DNA of 63,722 nucleotides, the filler included, from Platydemus manokwari (lineage: Eukaryota): NCBI GenBank assembly GCA_037951405.1. It is 6 parts of 6 records of this genome, joined end to end, with 100 filler letters (N's around TTAATTAATTAA, not from the genome) between each part and the next. Parts side by side here need not be neighbours in the genome. Positions count along the whole stretch, not along the records: positions 1 to 9,994 come from JBBMOY011163880.1; 5 more parts are not named here. The stretch is one strand, 5' to 3'. The notes below the pieces were generated by a model, which saw only the letters and a list, made by a program, of their open reading frames with translations, did not search any database and was not told where the DNA came from. Below, one piece after another: positions 2,477 to 9,994 of this stretch. The translations under genes and the position numbers were made by a program. The stretch's first letter is position 1. Each line of letters begins with the position of its first letter.

Positions 2477-5400
2477 TATAATTTTATCATTGGTCTTATT
2501 ATTCATGGGTTTTCTATTTTCTTCATTATAAGACTAAATGCCTTGATAAGTTATAATTTGATTAACAATTTCTTTATGTTAATTTCATATATTTTTAAAA
2601 CCAAATCACTGAGACTATATATATAGTTCGAGTGAGCTGTTATTATTAGTATTAACTGGTTTCGATAGCACTTCATTAATTAATATGGTGACAAAATTAC
2701 CCAAAAATAAGTGAACAATCCTAAAGACTTTAGTTTCTGATTTCAAAGAAGTATTTATTATAGTAGTTAATGTTTGTCCCACCGTAACAATATTGAGACT
2801 GAAATTATACTATTGTACAATACTGTAATAATTATAGTTATCGAGGAATTGAGATTAATTTATAAAAATTTATTTAGTAATACGAAAGTTGTACAATGAA
2901 AAAATAACAGAAAAGAAATCAGGGAAAGTATGCAACACTCAACACAAACTGTTTGGTTGAACAAATTAATAGAAATTAAAAATTGAAATTTCCTCTAACC
3001 CATACGCCGATATACCAGTGAAGATCAGCGGTTGAGCGAATACGGGGATAATTCTACTCGAACTCAACAATCATTTAGCATGCCAGAAATGCATATTGAA
3101 TTAATTCAGTTAGATCTCTGGTTAATTGGCTCAATTAAAAGCCACCTTTAAATACAATTTGCATCGTTATTGTAGTTGTTATTTGATGATGGAATTCAAT
3201 TAAGTGACTTTCCTAGATTTAAATCAACAAGATATTCCCGATTATTCAAATCGTTAATAATTTATCAGCAGTTAGAGGCCGATAATTGATGTTTCCACTA
3301 ATAGATAATTAGGTGTGTATTACTAATCAGAATAATTAATAGTAGACAACATAATAAATATATTCATTGTAATAACAATTGAAAAATGTATGTGTGACCA
3401 TAAAAGAAAGTAGTGTAGTGACCTCAAGAATAAAAAATCGACTGAGGAACTAGGCAGAGCCCTACTTCGATATAAAACTAAGGAAATTTAAGTTTTAGAC
3501 TCCGACAAATTCTGGCTAGACTTGTGCGGTTTAAATATTAGAGATTTAATTAATCATAATGAATAATACATTTATCTAAAAATTTTATGCTTATTGTTGC
3601 CTTAAATGTGATTTTTTATTTTATTGTACGTATTTACAATTATGTGTATTATAGCTATATATGTATGTATATTCAACATTATTGTTATTATTTAATTGTT
3701 TATGTTTATTATCATTTTCATGTTTGCCATTTGATTTCAATTTACACATTTCTTTAGTAGATAATTTAATATATAAATAACTATTTTGTTGAAGGAGGAT
3801 TCACTTAATATCAAACAATAAACGACATCCAATCAACATAATTCAACAATATAACAAAACAATAATATAATTCATTCTTCCAAAATAATAGAAATTAACT
3901 TCCATTTCTGATCCCATATAAATTCAAATCTCTTAAAACGTCCAATTGTAATCCAACAATCCTTATAACTAAATATCTATACTCAACAGCAATTCAAATA
4001 CAATTCGATAGAGCATTTCAATCCAAAGCTCGAGATGCTGAGCAGCATTATAATCCTCTAATAATTAACAATTAAACTTTAAACTTCTATCACCTTATTT
4101 AATTTATTGTGTAACGACTTATTATCACGTATCGATTTATTTTTTCCATGTAATTTTCAACTTAATAAGATCTCATAAATCACGAATTTTACTATATTCT
4201 TTGATTCATAAACCCATCGCAATTATTTATTTTACCATCTAGTCCTTTATCATATGAAATTGGAAAACCAAATAGGTGTCGAAAAATTAAAATAATATAA
4301 ATTAAAATAAATAAAATCTGTAATAAATTAAATATTATTGAAAGCAAAATAATAAAAATAAAATCAACAAATAAATATAGAACTAAAATAAATAGAGATA
4401 AATATAATAATAGTAAGATATTAATTAATGATATTTAAGGAAAGAAGGGTGAAAAATAAGTAATTTAATCGAAAAATTTTAATTCACACGAAAAGTAACA
4501 ATCGTACAAAGACAATAAGAGTAGTGTTAAAAGTAATCATATTTAGCATGATTTTAAAAGCATACATTTTCAGTGTACTCAGTAATTTATAAGAATTTAA
4601 CGAATTTTAATGACCTAGCTTTTATTGAATTTTACTGAATTTTATTATAAAAATAAAATTATTTTACCACACTAAATAGAAAAATTTAATTAAATTAAAT
4701 TAATTAATTAAATAAATTTTAAATCGATATAGTTCACATAATTAAACTGTGGCTAATAATTCAATAAATAATTCCTACGTTATACATCGATAAATAAAGG
4801 GTAAGGTTTTTTATTTTGTTAATTGGTTAATGTCAAACAAAGATCAAAAGTTAATGGGTGCTGAACTCCAACAATTTTGGTGATAAATCGTTAATTACAA
4901 CGCAATATTAATTGTTAAAAATGTCATAATTGTAATTTTTTTGTTTGGATATTGAGTGAGATTCATTTGAGAATTTTTAAAGTGGTGGAATTTCAACACT
5001 TAACGCATTTTATTAATCAAATTAAGAGTTCAAAACTCATTTATCGAGTTTTTTTTTAGATAAACATGATAATTCGACAAGAAACATTGTTGAGTATAAG
5101 AAAATTATAATTTCGAAATTTTTTTTAGAAATATACTCATATATGAACTATGGAGAAATATTTCTGGAAATCAGAAACATTAACTGACTCATGATTATTT
5201 TTTGTTTCATGATATCTGATAGAAGATTTAGATTTCACTTTATGACTTGCCAACATTTTTTAACAAGATCCCAGAAACAATTAAGTAGCTCTAATTTATT
5301 TAAGTCGACATATTATGTATTAAATATAATGTCAATCCATTATATATTATGATTGTATCTTTTACTAAAAAGCAATGAATACATTACAAAAAAATATCTG

Positions 5401-6099: not shown

Positions 6100-9000
6100 C
6101 TACATTTCGATGCTAAGATCATCGACTCCTTTAAAATTAAACGGTGTAAATCTAAAACCCTCTCCGCGATAGAATTTATTTTGAAATTCCACCCTGAAAC
6201 ATTGATTAAATGGTAAAACGAATCAACAAAATTGTACCAATGTAAACGAAGCGCGTGCAAAAAAGCCGATAATCCCTCCATTAATAAAAGAATTGCAATG
6301 GTCAAAACCGCCCACACTGCAAATATGAAAAACAACACAACACACCCCAGGTAACCGTTAATACCGAGACCGATACGCATGACCATATTCCACAGAACTT
6401 CAGATAGCTCTAAATTGTGAATAATTAAAACAATATCAGAATGGATTTCGTGTATTATTTACGTGAATGAGCGAGGCTAAGTGCCCAGAGTCGTAAATAG
6501 GAAGCGGTATTGGATATACAACCAAGACAATACTCAATGGTATGAATGCATTGATGAACAATTATTTCGCTCATATTAAACTGAAATCAATTTTCAATCA
6601 AGATAACATGACGAATAATTACCTCTTCATGATCTTCTTCATTATCGATCAATTCTATGGCATCCATTTTCACAATTGAATTATTGACCCCATCGACTGG
6701 ACTCCTCAATGATTGATCGACATCAGCCCCCTTAATAAAGCAATTCAATAATCAAGTAATCAATTGATTGGCTTGTTTTACATCATTAACATGTCCAGGA
6801 TCTAACAAAGATATCGATTTTCGAATTTTCTAAAACGAAAAACTGAAGTTCACGTATTTGACCAATGAAAACAAACTTTATGCTTCATCGAATGTTCACT
6901 ATAAAGAATGAGTGGCTTGATGACCAACATCCAAGGAATGCAAATTGCAGCGATAACAACGACGATTGATTGAATTGTCATCTGTCAAATATGTCTTATT
7001 ATCACCTTCAAATCAATATCAATTACTTGATTGCTCATAATCGGGTAACAGTCTTTTGGCGGTGTTTCAACTTTAAACATAAACATATTTATAAGCCCAA
7101 TCATAAGCGATGGAGCACAAAAAGATGTAGGCCCATCGTATTGTAACCATTTAATGAAAATTTCCACAATAAGATATCCGAAAATGGAAACCAGAAACAA
7201 AATTTGCGGAATAAATTCAGTAAAAATGCTTAGATAATTCTTAAAAAAGCATTGATTGAGTGAACTCAAAACAACACCGAACAACATGTGAAAAACTCCA
7301 AAAATAATACTCATTTTCATTTTGACTGAGTTGGTAAATTCAATTTTATTCGTACTAAACTGCCAGGTAGGATCGATACCAAATGGATAAGGATTGCCGG
7401 AATAAAATTTACTATTGGAAGCATTGAGTTGTAAATCATTATTGCCATTTAATGTGGAGTTGTCATAACTCGGATACCAACTTGATCCGAAAATATTGAT
7501 TGATTTGGCAAAGAAATCATTGTAAATCAATCCAGTATACATGGAAAACGTGCCCATCAACAAGATTATATAACGACCGCCAAAAAATATATTCCAAATC
7601 TCATTGTCGCTTTTCTGTCTCTGAATGGAAATAAATAATTAAAACAAAATCTCCTTCCTCATACGTACCAGGAATTTTTTCTCTCTCAAAATGATTATCA
7701 AAGCAAAAAGAAACATGATAAGACCATGACCACAATCACCAAACATCACTGCAAAAAGAAACGGGAATGTAATCACTGTAAAAGGAGCCGGATTAACTTC
7801 ACGATAATTGGCCACACCATAAGCATCAACGATATTCTGGAACGCAGCTGTAAATTTGTTTATTCTATGATATGTCGGTGGAGTAGATTTTTTAATGTTG
7901 TCTCCCAATCGATTGAGAATTGGTTGTATTGTTCCGTTACTTTTTTCCATTCCCGTTCGAAGTGCAGCATAGATTGCCTCCATGTCATTCACTGGACACC
8001 AACATTCACCAATCATGCATTTATCAGTTACATTAACATTGAACAGATTTAAAATCCGATAAATAGCTTTGATCTTTCGAATCTTTATGAACCAAATTCT
8101 TATGTGTTTCGCTGCTGTGATCAACACATTATGTCGATGGTTTTGGGTTTGATCAAGAACCGTTTTTAATTCTTCCATACGCATTTTCACACCTCTAATA
8201 ACTTCCTTTCTTTCGTTTGGATTATCGGTACACGGATAAATGGTAGCATGATAACTGAACATAATGTTGTTACAATAGAATTTTTCAATACCACTTACGC
8301 TTCACATATCTTTCTGACTCGAAGATGTAATTGTTCACCTTGAAAGAAAACCACAAACACCGATTTCGCTACCTTTTTATTTGGCTAAAATTCGAAAGTT
8401 AAAACACTAACATTACAAAATCAGAACTAAACCGTTATCAGATCTTCGAGATCTACTTCAATTTCGCTGAATTTTATGAGAACATTTCCACGACAAGCTC
8501 GCCACAGCATTCTTTCGAAACCAGGTAATTTTTCTCGAAGAATCACACCAGCAATGAATCTACATTTTGAGATAAATAAAATTATCTTAATTTTTTATAT
8601 TTCAAACAAAATTTCACAGCCCTAATTTGGCATTCTAATTTTCAGAATATAACGTAATAGGAGATATTTTAATACAAAGTACAACTGAAATTACATAAGT
8701 ACTTATTACTAACTGATAAGACAATATTTATTTTGTAATTATCTCTATTGAGTTATAACATGTAATAGAAATCATTATTGAATTATTATCAAATTTATCA
8801 TCATTTTATGCATGAATGCGATTTTATCATTAAACTTCGACAAACTGATCTATTTTGAAACGATTTTTAAAAATTCAAGATAAAAAACAATGATATTATT
8901 ACTCACTCAACTTTATAACTTCCCTTATCTGTATCTAACAATTTAAGATCTATTTCCCTATCATCCAACTTATATACTTCAGTAGAATCAATTGATACCA

Positions 9001-9773
9001 TCAATGAATCAGAATCCTGAGTAAAATGTATGTAAAAATAAAATTTTGGCACAGAGGGACACAATCAAATTGGGGATTTTATTTTGCAAAATTAAAAAAA
9101 AATCTTTGATACCTGATGTTAGGATTTTCACCAACAACATTCTCTCTATCATCATAATTTGAATCAATGTCTTGCAAAATATGTGAATCAACACCCTATA
9201 TGATCAGTATTTAAAATCAATGGGGAAAATGATCAAAATATATCACTCTAACCCCTTCAAAAAATACTTTTGTTTTTTGTAATAAGTAATTAAGTTCAAC
9301 GAGCTCAAAGAAATTTTTCTTTAGTTGTTCAAAATTGTTATTGATTTCCTTGAGATCTTCTTCTATACCTTCAAGATTAGTTTCTAAGTCAATTATTTCT
9401 CGTGGCTCCGGTGCTAAAGGATTATCCCCTGTATCCAATATAGGAATAGCGTCTAAATTAATTTCTTTCTCTAAAAATCCTTAGATAATAATTTTATGTA
9501 TTAAGTGTACGGTTTATATGTAATATCAACTTAATTTGCGTTCCATCTCATCGCATCTCCGTACTTCATTTACGAATTTTCTTTGGAAAGCATTGGTATC
9601 AGGAATTGTCTAAATTATTAGAAAATTAGTTAATCTTAATATATTTTAAGAATTACATCAATAAATTCCATAGCTCCTAATTCACCTAACTGGGATATAC
9701 AAGAATATGCAGAATCTGTGTGGAGAAATAATTGGCACAGAGTCATTTCTTCGCTACGAAAGAGACTGCCCAT
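6100..9773 (-). CDS. ATP6V0A: V-type H+-ATPase V0 subunit a (ATP6V0A/Vha100 family), complete multi-exon gene
   Basis: Starts [16 protein letters not shown] at 9773. Exons 9773-9657, 9609-9531, 9479-9253, 9195-9113 or 9016-8907, 8559-8433 and onward, all GT-AG. Motifs [46 protein letters not shown] (essential Arg) and [13 protein letters not shown]. Stop TAG at 6100-6102. Confidence 0.97.
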
Positions 9774-9994
9774 TTCTTCCTAATTTTAAAAAAATAATTA
9801 ATTATAATAATTATTTAAATTATTAAAACAAAAGTTAATTATGTTGAGCTCTTAATAAAAGGAAATGAATTTGAATACATATTGAGTATTATTCATATAC
9901 TTTTAAGAACTATAAAGTTATTTTATGTCGAATTTCAATATTTATGTTAAATATTAAATAAATCTGACAAAACATTTTGATTAATTTTTAAATT

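Follow-up and report, generated by a model that had tools for sequence, protein, structure and literature searches.

We propose, with a probability of about 0.77, that the V-ATPase subunit a gene of Platydemus manokwari contains two mutually exclusive exons, A and B, so that a productive mRNA would carry exactly one of them and the resulting proteins would differ only in an acidic loop of the cytosolic arm. The pair, a well-supported prediction, is of a kind already known from the gene unc-32 of Caenorhabditis elegans. All positions given below count along the window, by which we mean the whole stretch of DNA that was analyzed (63,722 nucleotides, filler included, from assembly GCA_037951405.1).

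The gene is complete and lies on the minus strand, with its ATG at 9773 and its stop near 6100; residues 1-836 of the homologues are colinear with 9773-6118, as found by tblastn with the full-length homologues P0002 and P0012. Its parts are the following:

9657-9773, minus strand: exon 1, starting at the ATG at 9773, donor gtaatt (tblastn of P0002 and P0012)
9531-9609, minus strand: exon 2, ending in phase 1 (tblastn of P0002 and P0012)
9253-9479, minus strand: exon 3, first long stalk helix of the N-terminal domain, ending in phase 0 after FFEG, donor gttaga
9196-9252, minus strand: intron 3 to A, 57 nt
9113-9195, minus strand: exon A, predicted alternative exon, 83 nt (3n+2), starting in phase 0, 27 codons plus AG
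9017-9112, minus strand: intron A to B, 96 nt
8907-9016, minus strand: exon B, predicted alternative exon, 110 nt (3n+2), starting in phase 0, 36 codons plus GA
8560-8906, minus strand: intron B to 5, 347 nt
8433-8559, minus strand: exon 5, entered in phase 2, opening the distal lobe (FIAGVI...)
6118-8384, minus strand: remaining exons, including the membrane part (tblastn of homologues; PF01496, E 5.7e-81 and 5e-62)

The full architecture of a subunit a, an N-terminal cytosolic domain followed by a membrane part, is present. The PF01496 profile (V_ATPase_I; curated cut-off 30.7 bits) is matched with 273 bits at 7639-8262, 210 bits at 6985-7563 and 34.6 bits at 9253-9477, exon 3 corresponding to profile positions 41-117; moreover, at about 6500 the membrane part has the conserved stretch with the Arg that plays a role in the proton path (PMC10352029). 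The best named relative in the fragment search was a Schistosoma protein (65%), as would be expected of a flatworm. Short exons and very short introns (47, 51, 57, 96 and 347 nt) make up the 5' part of the gene, and three of its six donors (at 9251, 9529 and 8431) are of the GTT type, as compared with GTA or GTG; the odd donor of exon 3 is thus normal for this gene. A further in-phase donor, gtgata, lies 6 nt downstream of it and leaves the argument for exclusivity unaffected. Exon B is the only one of the 5' exons with a textbook GTGAGT donor, and a donor of this sequence is kept by the last loop exon in all four species examined.

The coordinates, strand, splice sites and phases of A (9195-9113) and B (9016-8907) agree with those claimed by a previous sequence-only reading of this DNA. 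The exons are adjacent and each has its own acceptor and donor, ...atatag and gtatca for A, ...actcag and gtgagt for B; the first base of exon 5 completes a split codon, which encodes Arg when A precedes and Glu when B does. Local translation bore out the claim that either exon joins FFEG to FIAGVI in frame, both 3+A+5 and 3+B+5 being open, whereas joining 3+A+B+5 brings a TGA four codons into B, and joining 3+5 directly shifts the frame and leads to a stop after about 33 codons. One exon at a time keeps the frame and both or neither break it, likewise in the relative L018 described below. Neither in the window nor in L018 was an alternative acceptor or donor found by which a message could hold A and B together in frame; B's frame is shut by an upstream TGA and the sole other AG of the A-to-B intron precedes that stop, so no other AG can bring B in frame behind A. 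The reading frame itself would enforce exclusivity, messages with both exons or with neither being unproductive and, as we assume, probably removed by nonsense-mediated decay. Steric hindrance was considered as the mechanism of exclusivity and is unlikely, because the constitutive introns of the gene measure 47-57 nt and the A-to-B intron is longer, 96 nt here and 241 nt in L018.

A third alternative exon was not found in the intron B to 5, where the one chance candidate, of 59 nt, is not conserved in L018 or in L009, a second contig of the run that contains L018; no second copies of A or B were found in the genome itself. Around their acceptors and over their first bases, exon B (8997-9027) and exon 5 (8547-8577) resemble each other, with 74% identity over 31 nt; the reading frames are different and the likeness is probably due to chance.

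Taken alone, the exon-pair structure is evidence weakly beyond chance, and conservation in a relative carries the case. In trials with first-order Markov sequence of intron composition over a 693 nt span, one candidate made of AG, open frame and GT (at least 83 nt long, 3n+2) arose in 46% of the trials and two separate ones in 8%. Neither did the likeness between A and B implied by the earlier reading (DS..L..IDS and DDRE shared) survive scrutiny: it is not significant in the window (z 1.45, p about 0.1) and is negative in L018, so that the tandem-duplication likeness which is usual, if not obligatory, for exclusive exons is not seen in this pair.

The contig L018 (1165 nt, from a public DNA run) was found by a word search with exon 3, which in protein is 96% identical between the two; it carries exon 3, then A, then B, and double inclusion again results in a stop. 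The A orthologue (L018:335-420) has 86 nt, 3 more than A, and the B orthologue (L018:662-780) has 119 nt, 9 more than B; both are 3n+2 and have AG and GT flanks. In tblastn on L018 the E values were 1.5e-10 for A and 2.3e-10 for B, and at a search space of 1 Gb they still came to 1e-3. The conservation of A and B rests on this one relative: L009 has exon 5 and the next exons, with no loop exon found within 402 nt of intron upstream of exon 5, and a third close relative, L020, is without sequence over the loop.

Between window and relative the synonymous differences reach 0.66-0.93 per site, that is, saturation, and the introns align only at a short motif. Against this divergence, A shows pN 0.16 and pS 0.66 and B pN 0.24 and pS 0.85, codon positions 1 and 2 being better kept than position 3 in both exons (Fisher p 0.002 for A and 0.001 for B). 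Each exon retains its own conserved blocks at both ends in L018 despite the saturated divergence, and both A and B end in residues that match the hydrophobic-x-F pattern found in homologues before the distal-lobe strand. This substitution pattern indicates that A and B are both under purifying selection, in a frame that is translated only if exon 3 comes immediately before, from which it follows that 3-A-5 and 3-B-5 messages should both be translated in this lineage. The earlier claim that one gene provides two forms of the N-terminal domain through exclusive exons is thereby strengthened by selection on both exons, while the splicing itself is still a prediction from sequence.

The relative represented by L018 and L009 has a G+C content of 45-52%, versus 25-30% in the window; taking L009, L018 and L020 together, protein identity is 86-96%, yet G+C is 37-52%. 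The close relatives thus differ from the window by a strong compositional shift within the group.

To place the loop in the protein we used the mammalian a1 chains of solved pumps, in which residues 67-140 correspond to exon 3 and residues 170-211 to exon 5; the segment replaced by A and B is therefore the link of roughly 29 residues that connects the first helix of the stalk with the distal lobe, the domain layout of the cytosolic arm being taken from PMC10352029. The loop has 28 residues with A and 37 with B and is acidic in both; across homologues its length and sequence are highly variable, and a profile search with it returned no family match. The N-terminal cytosolic domain to which it belongs makes targeting and regulatory contacts in yeast and mammals (PMC10352029).

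These data have to be weighed against other accounts of the two exons. If only one exon were ever used, the other being a defunct duplicate or a frame that happens to be open between an AG and a GT, one would point to the ease with which such candidates arise in AT-rich sequence (46% for one, 8% for two), to the lack of significant likeness between A and B and to the run search, which returned no transcript: RNA runs with this locus were not found, the sole match being the DNA run X1, with one identical contig without joints, and cluster-representative and word searches gave no full-length or transcript-derived protein of this orthologue, the word search shutting out full-length kin of exon-sized queries through its length filter. 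Nevertheless, L018 keeps both exons with their splice sites and phase, with indels that preserve the frame and with substitutions of the coding type, between introns that cannot be aligned, and a dead exon would not outlast saturated neutral divergence; we therefore hold the use of a single exon to be very improbable. Only slightly less remote is the view that one exon is a normal coding exon and the other mainly a poison exon that lowers pump output via nonsense-mediated decay. Double inclusion does produce an immediate stop in both species, and the A-to-B intron is long enough for splicing; a poison exon, however, would be constrained as RNA and not as protein, whereas the constraint on B falls on the phase-0 frame, which is translated only when B comes straight after exon 3, and leaves third positions free, and the same is true of A, so that the selected frame argues against a pure poison-exon role. 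An assembly artifact, with one exon represented side by side by copies from two haplotypes or from paralogues, might come to mind in a genome as fragmented as this one (about 2 million contigs); it is hardly conceivable given that a contig of X1, possibly derived from the same data, covers 8300-9993 without a difference, that L018 has exon 3, A and B in the same order on one contig, and that A and B, dissimilar as they are, each occur once in the genome.

A more serious alternative, possible in our view but clearly short of an even chance, accepts that both isoforms are made and holds them to be functionally interchangeable, the loop having only to be acidic and flexible, with no role in targeting. 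The great variation of the loop in length and sequence across homologues agrees with it, as does the fate of the DxxLL-like DLKLL of exon B, pointed out earlier in connection with targeting: its aligned place in L018 reads EHRLI, and the strict signal is thus not conserved. What speaks for exon-specific constraint are the conserved end blocks that each exon has of its own, and rat a1 splice variants are reportedly addressed differently, according to the part of PMC3812966 that cites Poea-Guyon 2006. That one gene yields two differently targeted pumps, as had been suggested, is speculation. For the mutually exclusive pair that we favor, the two loop forms might, by analogy with the known systems discussed below, differ in the cell types or partners that they serve.

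We assume that intronic elements would regulate which of A and B is used, the best candidate being a conserved C-rich/UUGAUU element. In the intron 3 to A, a 12-nt element, TCCCCATTGATT, at 9226-9215 is identical to one in the 66-nt intron of L018 (L018:301-312); it is the longest common word of the two introns (12; shuffle p 0.001) and lies at a similar distance to the acceptor. A gapped copy at about 9077-9056, in the intron A to B, gave a gapped local score with a shuffle p of 0.001 and matches four 31-nt tandem units in the A-to-B intron of L018 (L018:492-616). The two intron elements are direct copies of the C-rich/TTGATT type, found upstream of each alternative exon in both species. Elsewhere in the window TCCCCATTGATT did not recur beyond chance, no complementary partner or docking sequence was detected nearby, and no RBFOX-type GCAUG was seen in the sequence between exon 3 and exon 5. 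A splicing regulator may bind this element, or the element may belong to a branch-site region, UUGAU fitting the usual branch pattern.

Among known systems, the closest is unc-32, whose exons 4a, 4b and 4c are mutually exclusive and measure 155, 107 and 122 nt, all 3n+2 (PMC3627589 Table 1); the choice is tissue-specific, involving intestine, neurons and pharynx (PMC3585155), and exon 4b needs the CELF protein UNC-75 (PMC3627589 Table 1; PMC3585155). Both genes belong to the same protein family and have adjacent either-or exons early in the gene, all of them 3n+2, such that the frame enforces exclusivity; the worm has three such exons, in contrast to two here, where splicing is predicted. A second cluster like exons 7a/7b of unc-32 was not seen in this gene, and no conservation of the worm's CELF-type UGUUGUG element was found. 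We take exon 4 of unc-32 to encode the same loop, between the stalk helix and the distal lobe.

Variation in the same loop, between the matches of exon 3 and exon 5, is also found in ATP6V0A1. The deposited mammalian a1 chains 9bra_a and 6vq6_a differ by 7 residues within residues 141-176, and in the chain set that is 7 residues longer the exon 5 match starts at 177 instead of 170. In mammals a short cassette is inserted in frame, as opposed to the either-or pair described here. The 7-residue difference fits, as we infer, the published N-terminal splice insert. Alternative splicing gives four variants of a1, a1-I to a1-IV, a1-I going to nerve terminals (PMC3812966).

In a wider frame, the exclusive clusters listed in PMC3627589 Table 1 are mostly 3n+1 or 3n+2, and A and B resemble this frame-enforced class in that their lengths are not multiples of three and that double inclusion or skipping shifts the frame, decay being assumed in our case. 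The arrangement also recalls the Dscam type, with adjacent alternative exons and a similar intronic element before each, but it differs in that the elements are direct copies with no docking complement nearby and in that A and B are not detectably homologous; most duplicated exclusive exons, by contrast, do show mutual likeness.

The unusual motif in exon 1 of this gene recurs at two loci that are more distant, L022 and L023. Their loop is encoded by consecutive exons, at 3675-3760 (86 nt, 3n+2) and 3923-4015 (93 nt) in L022 and at 6797-6876 (80 nt, 3n+2) and 7088-7180 (93 nt) in L023; the second exon is entered in phase 2 and both are jointly in frame. None of these exons has significant likeness to A or B. 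The expectation that both exons would be conserved in relatives was thus borne out in L018 and failed in L022 and L023, where either-or conservation is not seen; with consecutive loop exons in these loci, the either-or arrangement appears to be lineage-specific and is without backing from deeper conservation. An a1-like paralogue in the genome itself (L014 and C1262875) has one canonical loop exon of 98 nt with the same phases, and no further loop exon was found in the DNA examined (L014, C1262875). As far as the compared sequences indicate, the either-or arrangement therefore seems confined to the lineage that the window shares with L018.

When L022 and L023 are compared with each other, the second loop exon is highly conserved and the first hardly at all, and in L022 an in-phase inner acceptor at 3945 defines a 71-nt exon that is readable directly after exon 3. 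As to the origin of the pair, we tentatively consider, as an idea more likely wrong than right by a wide measure, that A and B derive from two consecutive constitutive loop exons and not from duplication, and that the loop became an isoform switch independently in three phyla. A shift of the acceptor by one base, or an equivalent change of length, would make the second loop exon readable only after exon 3 and thereby exclusive with the first; an arrangement of the supposed ancestral type, with two consecutive loop exons, is still present in L022 and L023.

If confirmed, the pair would mean that one pump gene gives rise to two a-subunits differing only at the tip of the cytosolic arm, and would add a third animal lineage with splicing variation of this loop, which would then appear as a preferred place for tuning the pump with catalysis untouched. 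It would also offer a compact test case for exon choice in flatworm-like genomes, with short introns and one conserved element per exon. For annotation, a gene model with both exons or with neither would be truncated.

Some further observations concern the surroundings of the gene. A second copy of exon 3 in the genome, L013 (G000:C593436, 243 nt), has 83% protein identity; a closer paralogue, a divergent haplotype and a foreign contig are all conceivable, and its short length stops before the loop exons. Upstream of the a-subunit gene, both distant loci have a kinesin-like gene in head-to-head orientation (L022:208-2297 and L023:2874-3451); the contig of the window ends about 220 nt upstream of the ATG, short of any kinesin neighbor. 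At 9782-9838, just upstream of the start codon, the depth of X1 contigs rises from about 13 to 219, and this is where many of them end; this segment is a dispersed repeat. On the plus strand, 1655-2476 holds an uninterrupted open frame of 273 residues with a protein kinase domain (PF00069, E 1e-34), apparently a kinase gene without introns, on the strand opposite to that of the subunit a gene.
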